Shown in pieces: positions 34,301 through 63,782 of a stretch of 64,000 bases of DNA. Origin of the DNA: Ruditapes philippinarum (Eukaryota). The notes under the pieces were generated by a model, which did no database searches, was not told the DNA's origin, and saw only the letters and a program-made list of their open reading frames with translations. The translations under genes and the position numbers were made by a program. The stretch lies in contig NW_026860356.1 in NCBI RefSeq assembly GCF_026571515.1, positions 124,001 through 188,000 of the forward strand, written 5' to 3'. How positions within the stretch are numbered: the stretch's first letter is position 1; every line of letters starts with the position of its first letter.

Positions 34301-37300
34301 ACAAAGAAACAAAAACAAATGTACATATAAGTATAGTGCAAATGGGTTGGGCTACAAGTTATTACAACATTAGCAACAGCCCTTCCCACAAAGTCAAACT
34401 TTATAATACATATATTCCGGATAGTTGCATAAGAATAGTTACACAAGTGGAAGTGAGAAAAAAATCAAAACGCGCACGCATGCACGCACGCACGCACACA
34501 CACACACGTGTATTTACATATTTATTATAAATTATCAATTAAAATGCTCCATAGAATTAAGATAGAACAGGGTCTTTCAAAAGAAATTTTAGACCCTGGA
34601 TAGAATGGGGAATTACTTAGCTTAACAAAATTGAAAAAAAAAATAAATAAATTAAACAGCCCTTAACAGAGAGAGAAGAAAAAACCCTACGTTGCCTGAC
34701 CTATGAAATTGACAGAGATGATGTGTGTTAATGTCGACAGCGATAATTTGAAATCAAATTCGGCAATTGTTTTACGTCATATGTCTAATTTACGTACACG
34801 TGTGTCAACAAGGAAACGACATATTTGTAAACACATTTCAAGGTCTACATTATGTTTTACAATTTTATAATCATTGACAGATGGAAATAGCGGTCAGTTG
34901 AAGTAAGTAAAGTATTTACATGTATATTTATCGGTACCACTTTAGAATGGGAATAAAAGCGGAACATAAGACTGTCTATGACTGTATGAGTGACCTGGAT
35001 TTTGTATTGTAGATACTGTACAAAAATTGTAGAAAGTGGATAAATTAAGGAAAAAAAAACATATACCATTACAAGATAACCAGATAGCTCAGCCGGTAGA
35101 GCAGCCTAGACTTTGTGTGGACATGGTTATAGGAAGGTCTCAGGTCTGATCTCAAGTCCTGATCTGGTTTTTTTTGTATAGATCAATTTTGAATTTATCA
35201 AAATCTTTTAGAATGTTTAATAAATTTTTGTACTTCAGAAAAAACAAATTCATTTTCGACATCATTAAGTAATGGGTTTCCAAATAAGAGTTTTTCTGTA
35301 TTTATGGGGTGAAAAGGTCTAGTAGCTAAAAATAAGTTAAGTCTTTGTTCGGTAAAAAGTTTGCATTTAAATAAATAGTGCTCTGCATCTTCTTCTCCAC
35401 TACCACAGTCACAGATAGGATTTTGTCGTAAGTAGTTCCTAAACAAATCTGCATTTAAATTACTGCATTGATTTCTTATTCTAGCATGATGAACAGAAGA
35501 AATACGATCCCCACTTAAAAAGAATTTAGAAACAACAGGCGGTTTAAAATGATTTTTCATTAAATTTTTGAAGTTTGAAAGATTTGGAGCATCACGAATG
35601 GATTGTGAAATTTCGTTCCATAGTTTAACACATGCTGGTATTACAGATCTAGAATAAATTTCTGTACGTCTTTGTACAGTTAAATAGTTTGAGTTACTTC
35701 TCAGATCATAATGATTATTTTCATTGACCATAGGAGGGAATAGTTCAGAAATATATGTTGGTAAAAACCCATGTTTTTCTTTATAAACTAGTACTAATTT
35801 TTGAATTTTCCGCCTGTCTGATAAAGAGACCCAACCGATTTCTTTTAATAATTTATCAATAGAAACAGAGCGTGTAAGACCAGTTACTATTCTTGCAGCT
35901 TCATATTGCATTTTTTCAAGGGTTTCTTTCTCAACATTAGTACAGCTATCCCATAAGACTGAGACATATTCCAAAATAGGTCTGAGATAAGAAATGTAAA
36001 TTTGATTAAGTGTTGTACGTTTTAATTTAAATTTTAGCATTTTCATTGACCCTAGGACTTTTGAAGCAGAGGAAGTTTTTGTTTGTTATATGCTCATGCC
36101 AACTTCCATTGTTATTTAAAATGACTCCAAGATGTTTGTGATCTTGAACTTGTGTTAATGTAGTATTGTTGAAAATAAGTTTTGGTTGCTCACGGTCTGC
36201 CAAAGAGAAAGTAACAACTTCAGTTTTTAATGGATTAAAATTTACCAGCCATTGTTGGGACCATGAAGAAATTTTTTGTAGATCAGAGTTTAACACATCT
36301 TGTATTGTATTTATATTAGTTGATGTAACTGCAAGAGAGCTATCATCTGCAAAAAGTCTTGCAGTACTTTCTAAAGACTCGGCTATATCATTGACATATA
36401 TGAGAAATAAAAGTGGGCCAAGAACTGAGCCTTGAGGAACACCGGCATTTAAATATTTAGTTTCTGAAAATGAAGATCCTACAAAAACTCTTTGCATTCC
36501 TATACTTAAATAATTTTCAATCCATTTATTAAATTTCCCTATAATTCCATATTGTTTTAACTTGAATAATAAACCCGAATGCCAAACCCTGTCAAATGCT
36601 TTAGAGATATCACAAAAAACTATACAAGTAGATTTTTTTTCATCAAATCCTTTACAAATTTGATGGTACATATCAATAAGTTGATAGACTGTTGAGTGTC
36701 CCGGAAGAAAGCCTGACTGATATTTATAGATAAGATCATTTGAATGTAAATAATTGTATAAATGTTAAAATATTACTCTCTCCATTACTTTACCAAGACA
36801 TCTGATTAATGATATAGGCCTATAGTTAGATGGAATTTCCTTGTCTCCTTTTTTAAAAAGTGGCACTACATTAGCTAATTTTAAGCAATTGGGAAAGGAT
36901 CCCTCTTGAAAAGACCTATTAAAAATAATACAAAGGGGTCGACATATTGTTTTTGAGGTTTCTTTGAGCATGCGATGGCTAATTTCATCTGGACCACTAG
37001 CTTTTTTGATAACTAAATTTAAGAGAATATCAGAGATTTCATGTTCTGAAATTTGAATATTGTCAATAAAAGAATCAGTTTTTAACGAAAAGTTTGGAAG
37101 ATTTGAATTAGTGTCATCAATTGTGGAGATTGAAACAAAATAATTATTTAAAGTATTAGCAATTTCTTCATCAGATACTGAATAACTGTTGTTTTCACTT
37201 TTTAGGGGTGGTATTTTGTCACATTTACATGTAGTAGAATTATCTTTAATAAGCATTTTAACAAGTTTCCAATATTGAGATGGGTTTGTGTTATTTAGAT

Positions 37301-40300
37301 CATGTAATGAATATTCTATATTGTTGAAAAAAGTTTCTTGAGCATATTTTTTCATGTTGTTGACTTTCTTTCTTATTTGTTTATATTTGTCCCAGTCTGA
37401 AGTTTTATTAGAATTCACTGCTTTTTTTTTAATCTGTCACGTTTTCTTGATGTTCTACGAATTTCGTTATTATACCAGGGCTTATCATTAGTACGTACAG
37501 TTACGAAATATGTGGGTATACATGTTTTTGCAATATCAAGAAATTTAGTAATAAAATAGTTACATGCTGTATCAACTGAATTATCATGTAGAAAAGACTA
37601 ATCTGTTGTTTGTATACAAGTATTCAGTTTATTAAAATCAGCTTTTTTGTAATTCCACACACGACGTTTAAAGGGGGCATCAAATTTGAAATTAATTTTA
37701 ATATAAGCATATGTAGCATAATGGTCACTTATAGTATTGTCCGTTTTAAAAACTCCAGAGTCATGCAATAAAATATTATTAGAAATGGCAATGGGATCAA
37801 TTAAAGTACTTGAATGATCACTTACACGAGTTGGCTGAGTTATTATATTTGACATGTTGTTAAGATTAAGAATATCCTTAAATTTTCTATTGTTTGAGTT
37901 AAGTTGATCTTCATTTACATCCCCTACCAGAATAATATAATTACCTATTTCTGATGCCTTCTCAATGCATATGTTTAGTTTATCCCAAAAATCTACCCTG
38001 TAGTGAGGGGGTCTATATACAGTACATATTAGATATGATTTACTTTTGTCTTTTATTTTGAGCCAAATAGTTTCTGGGAGAAGAAATTCTAGATCAAATA
38101 ATCTTTCAGGTCTTAAGTGGGCTGAAGCATATAAAAGAAATCCACCAGAATGCGCAGTATTATCTTTTCTAAACATATAATCATAACCTTCAAGTAATAG
38201 AGTACTGTTATTTATATCTGTATAAAGGTGTGTCTCAGTAAAGCATAGCATATCAAAATCTAGAAAATTTTCCTTAATATATTGCATTTTATTTCTAATA
38301 CTGCGAATATTTTGATGTATAATAGAAAAGCAGTGGTCTGTATTATTTTCGGGGCCTGGATTAAGCTCAATATCCCCAGATAACAATAACAATCTAAGTA
38401 AAAAAACATTAATAATATATAGGATCATGTGATCAATACTTTGATATGAGTGATAGTTTAAGAAATTACAACTTAGGATGTTACTGTGGTAGTAAGTGGA
38501 GAATGTACATAGCAAGATAGTTATGATAAGAACACACATAATAGAATGAAAAATATCTTGCATATACACATTATAATTATGAATTTGTTTTAAAAAGTAA
38601 TTTTTTATCCGTATGTACTTATACATCTTGATTAAATATTGGTATGATTCAAAACAACTTGAATTTAGTACTCTCTGTCTGCAGTTATAATAAAGCCCTA
38701 TTGTTACTCTCCATAAAGTTATATCATTACCTATTAGGTAAAAGGTTTATATCAATAATTACTGAGAGCAAACAAAGGGCTTTATTACTTAGTGTATTTA
38801 TATCTAACATAGGGGACAGGCAACAAGGGAAACTATTTTGATTACTCATACAGAATAAGTTTACTAGAAATAGGATGAGTATTAACATATTGAAAAAGAG
38901 GGAAGATAATAAATGTTAATATATATATTATTTATAAAAAAAAATAAACTTAATAGATAGAGACTTCACAGTATTATACTGTGAATGGAATACAGATACA
39001 AATCAAATTTATTCAGGAAAATTTGGCAAGAGTATGGAAAAAGTACACAAGACTTAAGTTAAATGTATAAAATAAACAAAAACATTAACAAAGACAGTCA
39101 GGTAATATATACTAATAGTAGTACAGGCAGGTTAGACAGGCGGACGAACAGACATAAATATACACTCTACATGTACACAATTACAAAAAATTTACAACAG
39201 TCAGGTTAAATATACAGGTAGTAGTGCAGGCAGGAAAAACAGACAGACAGACGGACAGACACCAACAAACAGGTATGAGCTTAGAAATAACGGTATCGTA
39301 TAAAACATTTACGAAAAAACAGTGGGATAGCAAATCATGTTTTGATACTTGGAGCTAACAAAAACAAAAATATATTAACTTGTTAAATCTGAANNNNNNN
39401 NNNNNNNNNNNNNNNNNNNNNNNNNNNNNNNNNNNNNNNNNNNNNNNNNNNNNNNNNNNNNNNNNNNNNNNNNNNNNNNNNNNNNNNNNNNNNNNNNNNN
39501 NNNNNNNNNNNNNNNNNNNNNNNNNNNNNNNNNNNNNNNNNNNNNNNNNNNNNNNNNNNNNNNNNNNNNNNNNNNNNNNNNNNNNNAATGTGTTTATGCT
39601 AATGTGATTACTTTTGATAATAAATCGTCTGCTAATAATATAAACAATTACAGGTAAATCTATTTGCATAGTTTACACAGTGTAGAGGCGTGTCTAAAAA
39701 TAGCAGTGTTACTATATATATAAGTATGTATTGATGTCAATATCTAGCGCACTCGATGTCAATAAAAACCTGTCAAAAAGACAGCACTTGTCACAAGGAT
39801 TATAACTTGTTTCGAATTTCTTGAATGTCGTCCATGTGCTTAATAAGGCAACTTTTTGTTGCTCCAGTAACCTGAACATAGACTCTACATCCCGCTATCC
39901 AGGTTTTAGTTATTAATTTGTCTCTTTTTAATTGCCGTGCTTGGAAGGATAGATTTTCTCTCAGCGGTGTCAAGTTTTCTTGGACAAAAATGCCATGGGA
40001 TATCTCTTTCCTAGCGTTATATACCCGCTGTCTTGCTTTCGAATTGGTGAACTTAACGATCACTTTTCTATTATAATTGTCTTTGGGTTTACCTTTTCGG
40101 TGGCACTTATCAATATCGCTGCTACTCAGCTGAATACCTCTTTTCTTGGCCTCTGCAAGAATTTTTGATTCTACATTCTCTTCATTGCTGCCGGTATCTC
40201 CTGGAATGCCCGAAATATCTAAGTTCATACGACGACCGTATTGAGCCAATTCGTCTTGATCCATCTCAGATGTCTTTAAGTCTGATTTTAAAGAGGCTAC

Positions 40301-51310: not shown

Positions 51311-51389
51311 CTAAAAATGGAAAGAAAATCTAAACATTACCGTTGAATGGAATTCGATACGATTAAAATCAAAGGAAACAAAATATATA

Positions 51390-52227
51390 TGTCACAGGGT
51401 TAGAAAAATGTGCAGCCTGACCGGGACTCGAACCCGGGACCCTCGGAATACCGTACCGCGGCTCTACCGACTGAGCTATCCGGCCGCTTACACATTTTCT
51501 CCCCTATATAGTGAACAGCTTTGAACCGTGACATACTCCCCCTGCTATATAGAAATGCGTCCTCGAATTTCACATAGTTACAGAGCAATGTGAATTAAAC
51601 TCTAATCTGTATTCAGTCACGGCCCCACGTTGGGCGCCATTTGTCGCAGTCCACTCTTACGATATGGGAAAGGTGCTGCTAAGAGGTTCTGGGCTTGAGG
51701 GTTGCTATAAAAATACAGAAATACGCTCTCAGAAAATATTTATTATCGATGAATACGAAGTCTGGCTCGCGCCATGAAAATCTTCAGTAGGAGTGCAAAT
51801 ACAAAATAATGACAAATGACATAAAATCATGAATGGCAAAATGTAGAATAACAAGTATGGGATCAATACAGACATTCATATTTACCTATAAAAATACAGA
51901 AATACGCTCTCAGAAAATATTAATTATCGATGAATACGAAATCTGGCTCGCGCCATGAAAATCTTCAGTAGGAGTGCGCATGCGTGAAGGTACTTAGTGC
52001 GGAAATAGAATATTTAAGATTGAGGCCCGTACCAATGGTTAGAACATACTTGTTAATAAATGAATGAATGAAGAAATGAATGAATGAGTAAATGAATAAA
52101 AGGATGAATGTATGGAATATAGGAAAAGGACACAAATATAGGACTTCACATAATCTACGGTGTACAATACGGGACATACATTTACAAATAACATCTAACA
52201 TTAATACATCAATATGACCCTGCGACA
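51390..52227 (-). mobile_element. Miniature LTR element (Helenus-like TRIM) with two different LTRs
   Basis: 5' LTR 52227-51642; PBS-Lys 51639-51622; PPT 51546-51534; 3' LTR 51533-51390 with tRNA-like insert; TATA on both flanks. Confidence 0.85.
51413..51485 (-). other. tRNA-like sequence inside the 144-bp LTR (not a functional tRNA)
   Basis: Intact A box, B box, D- and T-stems; mismatched anticodon stem; followed by T5. Confidence 0.85.
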
Positions 52228-54130
52228 TATACATCTGAACTAATAAGATCTGTGAAAACTATACTGATAGTTATTTTATGATGAACTATATTTTAGGTAG
52301 AACGGAAAAAAATTCTTAAAAACATAATTTTGAATTGATAACCTTTACTTAAAAAGCATGCTCCTTTTTAATAAATGTAATTACCAATTATATGCAAACT
52401 CATTGACTTTCTTAAGTTTTTTTTTCAAAATTAATATTCAGAAGAAGACAAAACTTTGACTGAATTACAGGCAAAAAAAATGCAAAAAAATCAGTAGCTA
52501 CCTTTGAGAATGATTTAATGAATATATCAATATAAAAACGAACTTCTACACCAGGTGTCACAATGCATTCAACATTTAACTTTCAGAAATGTAATTAGCC
52601 TGTACATCTTAAAATTCTGTTCTGGCAAGGTTTGAAATCAGATCGGCACTAATAATATCATTTGACGACTTTTAAGCTTTACTGGTGTAAAAAACCTCGG
52701 TAACCAATTTGTGCATATTGTTATTATTATCAGGAACAAAACGGGTACTTGATTGGAAACACCGATCCCCCGTAAACTTTCTTGATAGCTTCCTAACTGT
52801 AATAGTGGCAGTTTTAAATGAGATTCGTTCGGACATATAGCGATCACAATTTGGCCGTAATAAGGAACATGTATTCTGTGGGTTTGTATAGTTGGGATGT
52901 AAATGTAATAGGATGGGTATTTACGGTAATCTAAGTTAACAGTTAAGAGTTACTATCTTTCTTACTTATTGCATGGTATATACATTATCATTCTCAACCA
53001 ATCAAATTGTTGCAGTGAATACTGAATTGTATAAATAAGCTGACTTTGGCAATGTTAGCTAGGTTAGGTACTGTACCTACTCTGGTCAGTACAACAAGGC
53101 TTAGCCTTGAAACATTAAACTGGACTTAGTCCTAAATACAAACGTTTACGTTTATTATAATCGACCACATATAAAATATATCATAAACATAATCTTAATA
53201 AAATAATAGATATAGTTATTCTTTATATAAAACTAAATATAATTTGATTTGTATACTCATTCAATTTGTTAGGGCTTTTCATATATTAAAAGCATTGATT
53301 GAAATTGTATTTACTAGTTGTTGTTGTTTAGTCCATCATCTTTATAAAGTGACACTTACATATAAATCTACTGAGCCCTGAGAATTTACTCCAGTTATAA
53401 CTTGTGATCGTTTGGTCTCCGTGTAAAGCATTGATTCTCATTAGAACCTGACCACTATTACATTGGTGCCGTGACCATAGAATTCAGTGCTTGCATAGAG
53501 ACCATACATGTATATAAGTCATATATAAATTAATTTTAGTTTGTATTGTATAAATAATACAACTTTTACAGTGATGACATGCCTATATACATGTAGATCT
53601 ACAAAATTTGTGTATTGTTTAGTACATACTTTGTGAATTGTACTAAATATTACTACGTGTAGTAATTTGAGAATCTATCTCATTTTCAATCTATATTGCA
53701 CTATAACATTGGTTTCATAACTGGTGACTTTATATAGTGTGTTCTTTTTCTTGTTATTATTTTCATTGTCTTGTGTACTAGTATAACAAAGTACAGACAT
53801 TGCAAATCTGAAATACATGTATAAATGGAAGAAATTATATAGGGCATTATTCAGAAGATGTGTATAGATGTTGGACTATTCAATACAATAATAATATAAA
53901 TCTGAGATAAAATTAAAATAAGGAATAAAATAGGGTAAATTAAAATTTAGAAGTTTAAAAAAAAAATACATAGGATATATTTGTAATTTAGTAACATAAA
54001 AATAATAAATACATAGTTTAAAGTAAATTAGAAAACTATAAAATAACATACTATGTCTTAAAAAAAAAAATTTTAAACAAAAAAAGAAAATCGGTCAGTA
54101 TTTTTTGTAATTTTGGAAAGCAGTTTTAGG

Positions 54131-55919
54131 ATGGAATATTATGAATTGAACATTAATATTAGCATTCTGACTACACCTAGCACGAGAATTTCAAACACTC
54201 ATTCACCACTTTATGTAGATTCATTTCCTTCTAATACAAGGCAAAGGGACACAGCACATTTACAAAGGTATAGTGAATCTTTTGATGATAAATTAAGGTC
54301 TCCATATTTGAAAGAAAAATTTGTGTTTTCCCCTATCCATAAAACTGAAATTGAGGGACATTTGAATACACCTGAACAAATTATTTATAACAGGTATAAT
54401 TCAGATATGCCTACGCGTACACATGTACAGTCACCGTTAGTTTCTAAGGGTAGTAATGAAGGGTTGTTACGAACCAGTGATGGCTTTGTTTTATCTAATT
54501 CAAACAATGGACCACAACATCAGCGCCTAGGAAGGTTTATCCCACAAATGCGTTCAGTAAATTATGAAAGAGAGGAAGATACAATTTCTCAAAATAAATC
54601 TTACACAGTACCAATAGTTACTATAAGAGAATATAGTGATGTTAAGCATTCACTTCATTTGACTACAGCACCAGGAGATTTACTACACCAATCACCATCA
54701 GCACTTATCAAACACCATTAACGCATACATTACCTCATATGTATAATACAAATATGGGACAGACATCTCAACAGTGTATACAAACAAATGCTGCATACAT
54801 GACACCTCATACACAGTCAAGCTATATGCCCATGCCTAGTAACATGCCAGTATTTAATTATAATACACATGGAATCATACTAGTACTCATTCAAACACAA
54901 ATAGAAACATAAAACCAAACAAATTCGATGATTCTACCACTGAATGAACATATTATATAATTCATTTTGAACGTGTTGCCTCCTGGAATGAATGGAATGA
55001 GCAAAAAAAGGCATGCATGTTATCCATCAATTTAAGGGGGGAAGCCCAACGCTTACTCTCTACATTAAGTTCCCCTCAGTTAACTGATTATAATGAATTA
55101 AAACATTAAAACGAGCCCTGACTCAAAGGTTCAGTCCACAAGAACGGGAATTGGCATATAGGTGTGAATTCCGAAACAGGAAAAGGAATTCTGGGGAGTC
55201 TGTATCAGATTATGGATATGCATTAAGACTTATAGGACAGAAAGCATTTCCTTTAATGCCCCATACGGCACTCGAATCTTGTATCATTGATCAGTACATT
55301 CATGGTTTGGGTAGTTTTGAGTTACAAAAACATGTACAGTTTTTACATCCAACTACTTTAGATCAAGCTATAAGTGCCGCGGTAGAATATGCTGCGTTAC
55401 AGGGGTCACTTGATAAAAGATCAAAACCCGTAGATGACAAGGGGGACTTCTCTTCCATTGAAAGAAAATATAGTTTCTTCCCTTAGGCCATCAAATATGA
55501 AAACTGATTGTAATCTTGAAGATTTACAGCAAATGTTATCTTCTTTGTTAGATCAAAAACTTGAACAAAAGTTTAATGAAAAAATGTCTATGCTTGAAAA
55601 CAAATACTCGGATAATGTTATAAAGAAACAAAACATATCAAGTCAAAATAGCCCTTCACGTAATTCACGTGCAGATTCATCTCCACACAATAACAGACGA
55701 GTAGGAATTCAGAATAGATCCCCAAATCATTCCCCAAATAGGAATTTAAGGAATAATTCTAGGAATATTTCCTGTTCATATTGTAATAAACTGGGACATA
55801 CAGAAAGTCAATGTTTTTTCAAAGAGCGTAGAGATATTTTCTGTATTTTTTGTAAAAGGAAAGGCCATATTGAGAGCCGTTGCTTTCTAAAACAAAATGC
55901 TCCCTTACAGGAAAACTAG
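54131..55919 (+). pseudogene. gag: gag with capsid-like region and two CCHC knuckles, disrupted
   Basis: HFERVASWNEW, LRGEA, RKRNSGESVSDYGYAL, CSYCNKLGHTESQC, CIFCKRKGHIESRC; several stops/frameshifts. Confidence 0.88.
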
Positions 55920-56142
55920 ACCGGACTGGGGTTGTGGCCAAAACTTCAGTCATTTGTAAAAATACTAGGCCAATATGTGACATTACTATGACAAAATGTG
56001 ACACACAGTGTTCACAAATTAGTGAAAACACTGAAAACACAAACCTGATAAATGTTAGTTTACCAGAAATTGAAAACATAAACATTGTTCCGTTAAAAGT
56101 ACTTTAACGTCTGAACATTCAAATACAAATAAACAAAACACT

Positions 56143-57051
56143 TTGTATAGGAAAATCCCGGAAATAACAATTACTCCACCCGAATTAAGTCCTACTCCTA
56201 CTATAACAGAGACGAATGCTCAACGTGACTTATGTCAAAAACTAGGACAAGAGTGGTCGAGAAATGAAGGTCAAAATGTATATTGTGCAAATATAAATGA
56301 ACAAAGTACGAGTACATGTACACCATTAAGTTTGAAATTTAAAGTCACTGATTTAAATCATATTGAGAGTAAGGTTTTACAACAGAATAATGTTGATATA
56401 AAAACACCTCAAAGTTTAGGCCAGGAAAAGGAAAACATTGTTTCTGATATAGACAATAAAAATAAAACATGTTATTATGTAAAAACTGCTATAGGGCAGG
56501 TTAAGGGAGGAATGCTTATAGATTCTGGAAGTCCAGTTTCTATTATTTCCACCAAGTGTTATGATAGACTCAAACATAAGCCTAGGTTAGAACTTGTTAA
56601 AATGCCTTTGTCTACAGCAAATGGAGTCAGGCTGAAAATTGCTGGAAAATGTATGATTACTTTTGAAATTGAACATCTTGTTTTCTGTTTTGAGTTTATA
56701 GTTGCGGATATTGAGGAAACAATAGGCATTTTAGGCATTGATTTCTTCGAAAATTATAATGTCAGCCTGAAAGTACACAAACGCATGCTAAAAACTAGAA
56801 TGGGAAAAGTGAGATTGGATAACTTTATCTCAAGAATGTGTGCAAAGGAACAAATAACAGATATTCCTCATAAAAACAAACCATTGCTACACAACTACGA
56901 TCATGACAATTTGAATAAGTTAAGTGCAACACGAAAGTACTGGTTTATAGATAAAAAAGATAATGGTAAAATGATACTTCAATATACATTTGGCAAGAAT
57001 CAAAGTAAATCTTTTGAAACATTAGACACAAACTCTGCGTCAATATTTTAA
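56143..57051 (+). pseudogene. Retroviral-type aspartic protease
   Basis: LIDSGS, TANG, GILGIDF motifs. Confidence 0.88.
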
Positions 57052-58615
57052 ACATATTTATACTTTGAGAGAAACAAGCAGTTACTTGTCCAAAGCAAAA
57101 TAATTATGCTAGAACTGATGTCATGGATTAAAAGAGTGAAATGTTACTTAAAAATGACCATGTCTAACCAAGACTTAGACTAATGTATGGAATGGAATGT
57201 ACAGAAAAATACCAAGTTTAAATCAACACGACTTTAAAGGAAGATATATGGATATAAATCATTTATCATAAAATGTAATATATAGTTTACATTAAATAAA
57301 TCTTGTGATGATGATAATACATAGTTTGATTTTAAACAGCAATATTCATGTTGACATATGGAATTGAATATATGTTCCACATTGTACGTCTGAAAGATAA
57401 AGAGTTTAGAATTGTCATTTATTTTTTCATTATGTTTATATGAATATTAATTCTTGTTTAATTTTTCAGACTTCATATACATGTACATACTCAAGCCAGT
57501 TGTAACACACAAAACACTGCTAGTAATGGTGAAACATCATTTGGGCTTCACATTGTTTTCCATAATTCCACTACGGCTAGTGGGACCCAAAAATTTAAAG
57601 GTATCTTACAACAGGCTTTACGATTTATCCAAAAATTGGACTGTTTGTTGTTAAAGTTTATGAAATTTAAACTTTCTTAATTGTAAATTCAGACCTAATA
57701 TGTAATGTTTTGTAAGATTACTAGTTAATTTATGTCTTTATTATTCAACCATTTTTATGCTAATAAATTTTTTTTGATTATTTTATCTTATACGACAGGG
57801 AATTTTTAATTTTAAATTGTCATATAAGGGGTTTTTCCCCTTTAAATTAAATGGGAAAAAATCATTCCTTCCCTTTTTTTTAATTTTTCAACAAACATGG
57901 GTTTTTGTTTTATAAGGAGGGACGAGTTAATAGATGGGTATTAGGTAATTATTAAATTAGAAGTGACTATTTCTTTCTTTGATTGCATGGTATTTAAAAC
58001 ATTATCAAATGTCTCAAAAACCAAAAAAATCCAAATTGTTTGGCCCCAGAATGGAACATACTTGAATTGTATTTTAAAAGGCTTTACTTTTGTGCAATGT
58101 TGCCCAGGTGAAGTTTCACTTTTTAATAAACCCGGTTTTAGTTACAACAAAGGTTAAGTTGAAACAATTTTTTAAACTTGACTTAGTTAAAATTTCAAAT
58201 TTTAACGGTTTCTTAAATTTAAATGGGACCCACATTTAATAACATGTTTCTTTTAGAAAGATTAATGTTATTTATAATAATAAATAGAGTATATTTCTTA
58301 ATATAAAACTAAAATAAATTGTTCAGTATACTCATTCAATTTGTTAGGGCTTTTCATATATTAAAAGCATTGATTGAAATTGTATTTACTAGTTGTTGTT
58401 GTTTAGTCCATCATCTTTATAAAGTGACACTTATATATAAATCTACTGAGCCATGAGAATTAAATCCAGTTGTAACTTGTGATCGTTTGATCTCCGTGTA
58501 AAGCATTGATTCTCATTAGAACCTGACCACTATTACATATCAAAAGATTAAATTGGGTTGTATATAAGAGTTGCTTTCTTCCTTTTTTACTTATTCTTTG
58601 AAATACAAAATGGTA

Positions 58616-60915: not shown

Positions 60916-63098
60916 AACTTGTCATATATATCGTTAGCCTAAGATTTAGGCGTTGATATTTTTTGCTTATTCATAACATACGCGTTATTTCAATCTCGTT
61001 CGTGTATTTGATAATATTGAATCAATAATTATTATTATTATTTATTATTTAATACCGATCCCTGGTTGTAACCAGAATATAACATTTATAAAAGTAAAAT
61101 TATTAAACAAAGAGGAGAAAACTCTTGAAATAAAGATGCTAAACTTATGAACATTGTCATACATGATATGAGTGTAACAAAGAACAATTATCTCAAGTTT
61201 AAGGAAGATACCATTTATGGTCACAAAAAAGAAAAATGAATTTTAAAAAAAAAATTAATATATATATACCATTTATAGTAACAAAGAAGAAAATTAAAAG
61301 AAAAATTTAAGTAAATTTCAAATTGAAAATGAAAAAAATCATGGAAACCTTTGTCTTATTAATGTAATCACATATGAAGTAGGTCTTAATAATGAACGCC
61401 TTTTTTAAATTTGAAGTAAATCCATGGAAAAATTTTAAAAAACTAAAAAAAATGAGTAAGAAAATTTAAAATGTTATGGAGGAGATAATTCTGGAAATAT
61501 GAACGCTAGATTTAAAACCCTTGTCACATTATTAAGATATGGCAGTTTGAAGGAAGTGCTTTAAAAGTTTATAAAGAAGTTTCACAAGCTAGCACTGGCA
61601 AATTTTTCCTTTGAGACAATTTTTTCGCGGCGAAAATTGCCTGTCTGTATTTTATTTTCAAATAAGGCAATGGTACTACATGAGATATATAGAAAACATA
61701 AACTATATACAACTTTATTTTGGTAGCTACATTTTTATCACATTGACACATGCAACTTATATAATTTACAGTCAGTAGTTATCATAAAAGCTTGCAGCTC
61801 AGTTACTATAACATTTGCCAGGTTAGGTTGGGCAGCAATGTTCCCATAAAATCTAAGTCAGTTGCATGACAATGACAGCAGAAACACATTCTAATGTGCT
61901 GCTTTAGCTTGCTTGGTAAATGCCGTGATTTGGCTTGAAGACATCTGTATAAAAATAAACATGTTTGAAAGAAAGAAGAATGAAGAAAAGAGTACTAAAG
62001 AACTCTAAACTAAGATAATGCAGCTAAAACTCACATACTTTTCAAGTGTAAAGTAATCAGTATAAGTTACCTAAAGGCATTTTGAATGCTTCTTGACTGA
62101 ATCTTTATTATTTCACAGTCATTTGCAAATTGTAAATGAATGTTTCTGTGAGAGCTTTAGACAAAACTGAAATTTGGTTTTAAGTTTCAGAAATGCCTTA
62201 CCCTGTCAAGCTTCAAATGTCAAATAATTTCCATGTCAATTTTATGTTTTTGGGGCCATAATTAGGTCAGATTTTATTGGCAATAAATCCCCCACCCCCA
62301 AAAAAGCAGCAAAGAACCCTTCACTCTATAACTCACAAATTCCTTGGATCTTTTTTTCTTAACAATAAATACCGGCAAGTCGTCAACTGCAGAACATAAT
62401 TTGTCACTATTTCATACCCAACTGCTGATTTGATTAGCGATAATCTTAAAATGCCGCTATTTATTGTTTCATACTGAATATTAAGACCAATTATCCAGTT
62501 CATATTCAACAAACTGCCAAGTATTATTACACCAATTAGTGTCATATTTATCAGCTGATAAACATGTAAACATACCATGAGGTCAATGTATTAGACTGTG
62601 TTACTGTTCATAACAATATTTTATTCGGATAGGAAGTAACAAATATCAACCAGTCAATGACCCACAAGAAAAAGATTGTGTCGCTGTGTTTTGGGATAAG
62701 AAGCGGTAAAACGGAAGTTGTAGATGGAAAACCAAATGTGTAGTTTTCCATTCTTAATATAGCAAATGCTAAATTTAGACTGGAGATACCAAAAGTCATA
62801 TTTTTCGTAAGTTTGAGCCAATCGTGATTTTCTTGACCCAGTTAAATAATTTTGGAGCCAATTTGCTCATTGGCTCCTGCAAGCGCGAGCTGTTTGAGTA
62901 AAATGTTATAATTTCTAGAAAAAAAATCTAAGTTCAAAGGTAACAAAATTCTGGAAATAGTCAAACTAGAGTATTTAACCTTCTCACAAATGACTTGAGT
63001 AATAGTAAGACACACACACACACATATTATATATAACTTAATAGTAGATACATTATGTACGGTGGCACAAAGGTGACATGTGTGTATTTTTATTTATC

Positions 63099-63397
63099 TC
63101 GTGGCCACGAGTAACTAAGTCGTGGCCACGAGATAGCTTAGTCGTAGCTACGAGATACTATGTCGTGGCCACGAGTAACTAAGTCGTAGCTACGAGATAC
63201 TATGTCGTGGCCACGAGAAACTAAGTCGTGGCCACGAGATAGCTAAGTCGTGGCCACGAGTTACTAATTCGTGGCCACAAGTTACTAAGTCGTGGCCACG
63301 AGATACTATGTCGTGGCCACGAGTTACTAAGTCGTGGCCACGAAATAGCTAAGTTGCGGCCACGAGATACTATGTCGTGGCCACGAGATAGCTAAGT
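63099..63397. repeat. 21-22 bp minisatellite with palindromic core TCGTGGCCACGA, 14 units
   Basis: Directly visible. Confidence 0.95.
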
Positions 63398-63782
63398 GGT
63401 ATCTTATTTGAAATCACAATTACGAGTTCACAGGTTCGAAAACTCCAGCGAACTCCGCCAGGAAACTCAACTCTGCGCGTGTTGAGTACATTGAAGCAGG
63501 ACTGTTTTGAAAACGTTTATGATAAATGGGTTGCCCCACACTGACAGTGCCTCGCGAAAAACGGTGAATACTTTGAAAAACATTTTTAAAAATCTTATAA
63601 CGTCATGACGTTTATGACGGCGTGCGCCGGGTATGTATAGGTAGCATTTTTTAAATTTTGATAACTTGGTCAATTTTGGAGGTATTTTTATTTTATTTCG
63701 CATAGACACACATAAAAGGTGTATTGACTTTTTCCTAGCTGGAGGACTCTATTGTATTATAATTGATTAAGTAACAGACTTT

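Follow-up and report, generated by a model that had tools for sequence, protein, structure and literature searches.

A hetero-LTR mini-retrotransposon in a bivalve genome, probably formed by transfer at the primer-binding site between a Helenus-type TRIM and a Ty3/Gypsy-like element

We analyzed a 64-kb stretch of a marine bivalve genome, hereafter the window; the coordinates given without a contig or locus name are positions in it. The source species, which we take to be the Manila clam, is presumably a heterodont; the stretch is also present in marine sediment metagenomes. On the minus strand of the window, at 51390-52227, lies an element of 838 bases with a Gypsy-type LTR on one side and the LTR of a Helenus-type TRIM on the other. 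In minus-strand order, its parts are:

52231..52228, target-site duplication (TSD) copy TATA, upstream as read on the minus strand, identified from the sequence and the empty allele
52227..51642, minus, 5' LTR of 586 bp (LTR586; TGTCGCAG...CTGCGACA), of a Ty3/Gypsy-like family
51705..51977, minus, 181-bp tandem duplication in LTR586, with 92-nt copies at 51705-51796 and 51886-51977 that are 98% alike
51744..51739, minus, AATAAA, likely polyadenylation signal of LTR586 judging from sequence, 97 nt from the LTR end
51641..51640, minus, AA between LTR and primer-binding site (PBS), helper type; ordinary TRIMs have TT
51639..51622, minus, PBS TGGCGCCCAACGTGGGGC, 18 nt, complement of the tRNA-Lys 3' end, common to helper and TRIM
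51621..51547, minus, TRIM internal non-coding spacer, 75 nt, TRIM-type sequence
51546..51534, minus, TRIM polypurine tract (PPT) AGCAGGGGGAGTA, identified from the sequence
51533..51390, minus, 3' LTR of 144 bp (LTR144; TGTCAC...CTGTGACA; TGTCAC...GTGACA), Helenus-type TRIM
51485..51412, minus, tRNA-like unit with A and B boxes, a presumed Pol III promoter (ARAGORN and Rfam)
51408..51404, minus, TTTTT, a run of five T after the tRNA-like unit, identified from the sequence
51389..51386, TSD copy TATA, downstream, identified from the sequence and the empty allele

The order LTR586, AA, Lys PBS, 75 nt, PPT and LTR144 had been proposed from the letters of the window, and all of its coordinates check on the minus strand. 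The original prediction also held that the two LTRs share nothing except their tips, and this is so: their local alignment score is 16, against a mean of 16.4 for shuffled sequences. The tRNA-like unit attributed to LTR144 is called by ARAGORN and scores 44.5 bits with the Rfam tRNA model, above the gathering score of 29, with non-standard pairs in two stems. The Lys PBS at 51639..51622 is the sole such site within the window. LTR586 also contains an 8-nt periodic run (AATGAATG-like) at 52050-52114.

An empty allele of this locus is present in public data. A contig in run X1 joins 51384 to 52227 and skips 842 nt, corresponding to the 838-nt element plus one 4-nt TSD; 5 nt at the joint can be assigned to either side, and depth there equals that of the flanks. 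Such an allele, with a single TATA, had been predicted. It had been cautioned at the same time that TATA in an AT-rich flank could match by chance, a 4-nt match with a probability of about 0.007 at the local composition; the 842-nt difference sets that concern aside and identifies TATA/TATA as a true TSD. Since the empty allele removes 838 nt and exactly one TSD, the unit with its two unlike ends entered one TATA in a single event. Neither half of the hybrid has a TSD of its own. The findings that would have told against a single hybrid, a separate duplication around LTR586 or an empty site pointing to two insertions, are absent here. Both outer borders are crossed by contigs in runs X15 and X6, from other samples (flank into LTR144, 51321-51416; LTR586 into flank, 52202-52700). 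Because both halves are high-copy repeat sequence, no locus-specific read or contig bridging the inner junction at 51640 was found among the raw reads and contigs of the public runs; the same inner arrangement is seen at at least seven other assembled loci. The insertion is polymorphic in the species, and the system may therefore still be active.

The 144-bp half belongs to an abundant family. A search of the genome sequence returned dozens of ordinary LTR-interior-LTR copies with two 144-bp LTRs, as had been predicted, and the exact series of ordinary LTR144 end, 2 nt, Lys PBS and TRIM interior occurs 235 times in the 1.4-Gb assembly. An ordinary unit measures about 395 bp (144 + 2 + 106 + 144), and tandem arrays have a period of about 251 bp. 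Arrays of at least four units lie at C6582:14592-15741, C7059:119827-121895 and C3802:15425-16427, and some units stand side by side in opposite orientation. Three TRIM PBS variants occur genome-wide (...ACGTGGGGC, ...ACGGGGGAC and ...ACGTGGGAC), at least two of them also in the helper family; they could point to two tRNA-Lys isodecoders acting as primers, or to PBS heteroduplexes that were repaired. In the window copy, the TRIM half (51390-51641) carries about 8 private changes in 252 nt (about 3-4%), against about 0.5% for the LTR586 half. These changes require a diverged source TRIM, and the source RNA was probably that of a diverged copy, as would be expected if any TRIM copy with a Pol III promoter could be transcribed.

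Helenus (TRIMp3) is a published group of non-autonomous LTR retrotransposons (Kojima, 2024; PMC10886601). The window copy shares with it a tRNA-derived sequence inside the LTR, a short, non-coding body with PBS at the 5' LTR and PPT at the 3' LTR, and the 4-bp TSD found in animals (TATA/TATA; ATTG, TATT and CACA in other hybrids), and its tRNA-like unit, with A and B boxes and a T5 run after it, is a presumed Pol III promoter. Two like LTRs, a further Helenus feature, are found in ordinary members of the family and are lacking in the window copy. As its 5' LTR586 has no similarity to LTR144, the window copy is best described as a chimeric derivative of a Helenus-type TRIM, not a canonical member. 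The nearest published families are Helenus-3_CGi and Helenus-3_CVi of oysters (PMC10886601), which like the TRIM here have TT and a tRNA-Lys PBS, the interior motif aaattcgaggacgaatttc, the PPT gggggagta and the tips TGTCAC...CCTGTGACA. The tRNA-like unit in a short LTR, 4-bp TSDs and tandem arrays are likewise common to Helenus and this TRIM, whereas the foreign 586-bp 5' LTR sets the window copy apart (PMC10886601). The family is not biv-TRIM (PMC6934838), which has no canonical PBS. Molluscan Helenus elements have been listed from Pteriomorphia only (PMC10886601); if the host is the Manila clam, the range of the group is wider than published and extends outside Pteriomorphia.

The 586-bp half likewise has many relatives. 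Many other LTRs in the genome, solo and paired, match LTR586 of the window at 98-99% identity. The family is high-copy and most copies are solo, with perfect 4-bp TSDs around 13 of the approximately 18 solo LTRs examined. A variant LTR of 403-406 bp without the 181-bp duplication occurs elsewhere in the genome, also solo with its own TSD. The prediction of Lys-primed elements flanked by two 586-bp LTRs is borne out: paired copies lie at C8033:19475-28461 (9 kb) and C13736:20482-25169 (4.7 kb), with AA and then the Lys PBS of the hybrid next to their 5' LTR. Across six copies of the family, the 3' interior is conserved and ends in the PPT GAGGGGGAGGA, similar to the TRIM PPT AGCAGGGGGAGTA.

Part of this conserved interior encodes a Ty3/retroviral-type integrase. 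In one copy of the family, the frame L074:2684-3091 on the minus strand matches the Pfam domains Integrase_H2C2 (3.4e-16) and rve (1e-05), and its best PDB relatives are PFV integrase and Ty3 Gag-Pol. A 278-aa open frame at L020 resembles an integrase C-terminus in its features only and is a lead. The family thus has the features of a Ty3/Gypsy element at its ends (TG...CA tips, tRNA PBS, PPT, short TSD) and in its pol region (a retroviral-type integrase with H2C2 zinc domain and DDE core). Judged from these sequences it evidently descends from an element with an integrase gene; it is at most a candidate autonomous family, the integrase region being the part that is seen. Coding capacity was judged from 1.5-kb flanks, and in two long copies no long open frame occurs within 1.5 kb downstream of the PBS. 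Other open frames near 586 LTRs mostly gave no Pfam match, and the matches obtained there to RVT_1 (L015), DDE_1 (L035) and, weakly, XG_FTase (L066) were attributed to unrelated neighbors. The original prediction proposed that the 586-bp LTR identifies the autonomous partner of the TRIM. The chimera supports the part of this claim by which both RNAs shared one particle; that the 586 family supplied the proteins does not follow from it.

The 4.7-kb copy at C13736 is itself an internal-deletion derivative. At its locus (L005, C13736:23065-26669; locus positions 1519-1480, minus), the PBS after TGGCGCCCAAC runs directly into an integrase C-terminal frame that agrees with the L020 frame at 176 of 185 residues, so that this copy contains another aberrant join inside the PBS.

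A further LTR element lies 1 kb from the hybrid, at 53217-58538, with direct repeats of at least 247 nt that are 92% alike, stand 5075 bp apart and enclose a gag-type zinc finger and an aspartic protease. We considered it as the helper and ruled it out because the window has no second Lys PBS, and this element accordingly none.

Junctions like that of the window recur across the genome. A 586-type LTR is joined to TRIM interior at the PBS at at least eight loci, three of them with perfect TSDs. Besides the window copy, these include:

C8737, TSD ATTG/ATTG, 403-bp LTR without the duplication
C4098, TSD TATT/TATT around 586-int-144-int-144
C10251, TGTA/CGTA, 3 of 4 TSD bases
C2683, CTTA/TTTA, 3 of 4 TSD bases
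C910, two hybrid copies, truncated
C10802, an old hybrid copy

At three further loci (C4950, C12446 and C12897) a TRIM unit is preceded by an LTR of another kind; the one at C4950 is a 689-bp LTR, and the joined unit is flanked by the TSD CACA/CACA. The exact series CTGCGACA, 2 nt, PBS and TRIM interior occurs at 13 places genome-wide versus the 235 ordinary junctions, a foreign-LTR share of about 5% of exact 5' junctions. Three of the 13 have AA (586 type, window included) and ten have AT. A count of other hetero-LTR copies had been suggested for the window element; with these loci of the 586 type, and more with other LTR families, the hybrid turns out to be recurrent and not unique.

The exchange falls at or next to the PBS. 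The window copy is helper-type up to AA and TRIM-type from the second base past the PBS (CGTGACTGA versus CTTGAGG in the helper), which places the switch within the PBS plus one base. Apart from the PBS, the TRIM and the large element have no long stretch of identity. The C2683 hybrid (L003/L065, C2683:605-1441) differs slightly: the end of its 586-bp LTR reads CTGTGACA and then TT, as in TRIMs, in place of CTGCGACA and AA. The exchange therefore falls a few bases before the PBS, within the similar LTR tip (CTGTGACATT after the 586 LTR). Chimeras on the PPT side were not found in the genome with up to three mismatches, either from TRIM PPT into LTR586 (0) or from helper PPT into LTR144 (0). 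The reciprocal product, LTR144 followed by PBS and helper interior, was also not found genome-wide with a degenerate pattern 35 positions long, which just two helper junctions matched. Because helper interiors are so rare (two exact junctions), the absence of the reciprocal product is weak evidence.

We consider it probable that the hybrids arose by intermolecular, PBS-mediated strand transfer in a co-packaged particle, followed by one integrase event that left a dead-end hybrid. TRIM RNA, made from a tRNA promoter of the Helenus type, and Ty3/Gypsy-like RNA would enter one virus-like particle, where tRNA-Lys would prime both at the same 18-nt PBS. DNA of the large element with the make-up of plus-strand strong-stop DNA, a whole LTR plus a copy of the PBS, would then anneal by its PBS copy to the 3' end of the TRIM minus strand. 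Extension of both strands would yield LTR586-PBS-TRIM interior-PPT-LTR144. The product could integrate with the usual 4-bp duplication because the integrase would read terminal bases that both LTRs share (TGTC...GACA). Use of one integrase and one reverse transcriptase would be in keeping with the common LTR tips, the PPT similarity and the 4-bp TSDs. The original prediction had named plus-strand strong-stop DNA of a helper, annealed through the shared PBS, as the intermediate. Its three predictions of ordinary TRIMs, paired 586 elements and an empty allele came true and support the hybrid model, while the exact step, including which DNA strand switched, is one that we infer. Copy-choice in minus-strand synthesis alone would yield complexes of three LTRs with identical outer LTRs, a structure other than the one observed.

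The same product could be made outside reverse transcription, if host enzymes joined finished linear cDNAs of the two elements before integration across the 18-28 nt of PBS and LTR tip that they have in common, either by homologous recombination or by single-strand annealing. Such a route predicts the same TSD and the same empty site, and the exchange inside the LTR tip at C2683 fits annealing over the whole similar stretch. It would, however, need processing of double-strand ends that nevertheless leaves ends recognizable to the integrase, and the reciprocal product was not seen. Sequence alone cannot separate the two routes, and we regard recombination of finished cDNAs as unlikely.

A second alternative is that the hybrids descend from one founding hybrid that went on replicating as a hetero-LTR lineage; in its favor, several copies are 95-97% alike over all 838 nt, each with its own TSD. 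Against it, when 49 TRIM units are placed in a tree, labelling the six hybrids takes six changes, as many as with shuffled labels. In a tree of 25 long LTRs, three hybrids are scattered, and the window LTR has a private branch of 0.005 as sister to the solo LTR L007. Both trees are star-like and are therefore weak evidence alone. The pairings also vary: the window combines a duplicated LTR with TRIM subtype 2, C4098 a duplicated LTR with subtype 1, and C8737 the unduplicated 403-bp LTR with subtype 1. Moreover, the TRIM half of the window copy matches ordinary TRIMs at 95-96% and the interiors of other hybrids at only 84-90%. A hybrid transcript that starts in LTR586 has no matching 3' R and cannot reproduce the hybrid. 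With no matching R regions there is no self-copying, so that each genomic hybrid would represent a separate event. The lack of clustering and the varied pairings of LTR and TRIM subtypes argue that the hybrids are independent dead-end products, and we think a replicating lineage very improbable. We give hardly any credence to two separate events (a solo LTR beside a TRIM fragment, or a nested insertion with a deletion) or to an assembly artefact, which the abundance of both families and the AT-rich flanks might suggest, but which is at odds with an empty allele lacking the whole unit and exactly one TSD, with the lack of a separate TSD for either half, with a junction at the PBS in every copy and with outer borders confirmed in two independent runs.

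If the hybrids did arise by PBS-mediated transfer between co-packaged molecules, the frequency of that transfer is of interest. In retroviruses, plus-strand transfer is reportedly almost always intramolecular, a result said to go back to Panganiban and Fiore in 1988, Hu and Temin in 1990 and Yu and colleagues in 1998. A hybrid share of about 5% would be surprisingly high against retroviral rates, a point against the transfer model that is softened by the longer survival of hybrids, which escape LTR-LTR collapse. Plus-strand transfer relies solely on the short PBS complementarity between strong-stop and minus-strand DNA (PMC3187697). The same PBS stretch joins the two halves here, but the retroviral transfer normally takes place within one DNA complex (PMC3187697), whereas here it would take place between two. 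The restriction of chimeras to the PBS side also provides a natural read-out of this rarely observed transfer between two DNA complexes.

The LTRs of the rice elements Dasheng and RIRE2 are said to be similar, so that chimeras between them would not be hetero-LTR in the present sense; these are plant elements with Pol II promoters. Helper/parasite chimeras of this pair have been reported (Jiang, Jordan and Wessler, 2002, as cited in a passage of PMC5473765). The complex elements of Triticeae (Sabot and Schulman, 2007; PMC1950507) resemble the hybrid in being attributed to aberrant transfer between co-packaged RNAs and in forming one unit with one TSD. They differ in having three LTRs with an identical outer pair, joined through R, whereas the hybrid has two unrelated LTRs joined through the PBS. 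The window element accordingly does not show the pattern by which Sabot and Schulman recognize such complexes (three LTRs, the outer two alike, one TSD). Chimeric TRIMs of sugar beet carry an extra LTR from another family, for which the authors consider template switching or recombination (Mob DNA, 2026; PMC13570524). As far as the available portion of that report goes, the donors are other TRIM families in tandem, and no helper LTR, PBS crossover or empty site is described (PMC13570524). We found no earlier report, in the literature searched, of a hetero-LTR, PBS-joined hybrid of helper and Helenus in an animal with an empty site and a genome-wide count.

The mobilizer of most TRIMs, Helenus and Cassandra included, is unknown or guessed from PBS similarity (PMC10886601, PMC6934838). 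Gypsy partners for Helenus were proposed from PBS similarity alone, with no mention of chimeras (PMC10886601); one candidate of that study, Gypsy-125_CGi, shares with the 586 family the AA in front of its Lys PBS. A one-unit hybrid with an LTR from each party is physical evidence of joint reverse transcription, and since hybrids recur genome-wide, they document the large elements in whose company the parasite moves. Such hybrids can be found in any genome by a simple structural search.

It is quite conceivable, and we stop short of calling it likely, that hetero-LTR hybrids are a regular by-product of TRIM mobilization, formed by PBS transfer in a few per cent of integrations and kept since their unlike LTRs cannot collapse to a solo LTR. 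Having escaped LTR-LTR collapse, hybrids would outlast normal copies. If this is true, they would constitute a genome-wide fossil record of RNAs that shared a particle, one Helenus family would be tied to several related Lys-primed Gypsy-like families, and plus-strand transfer between molecules would be far commoner in these particles than in retroviruses.

Two other repeats were seen in the window. On the minus strand, 35198-38626 is a LINE-type element whose open frames match an apurinic-type endonuclease (Exo_endo_phos) and a reverse transcriptase (RVT_1), and 63095-63412 is a tandem array with a 21-bp period.
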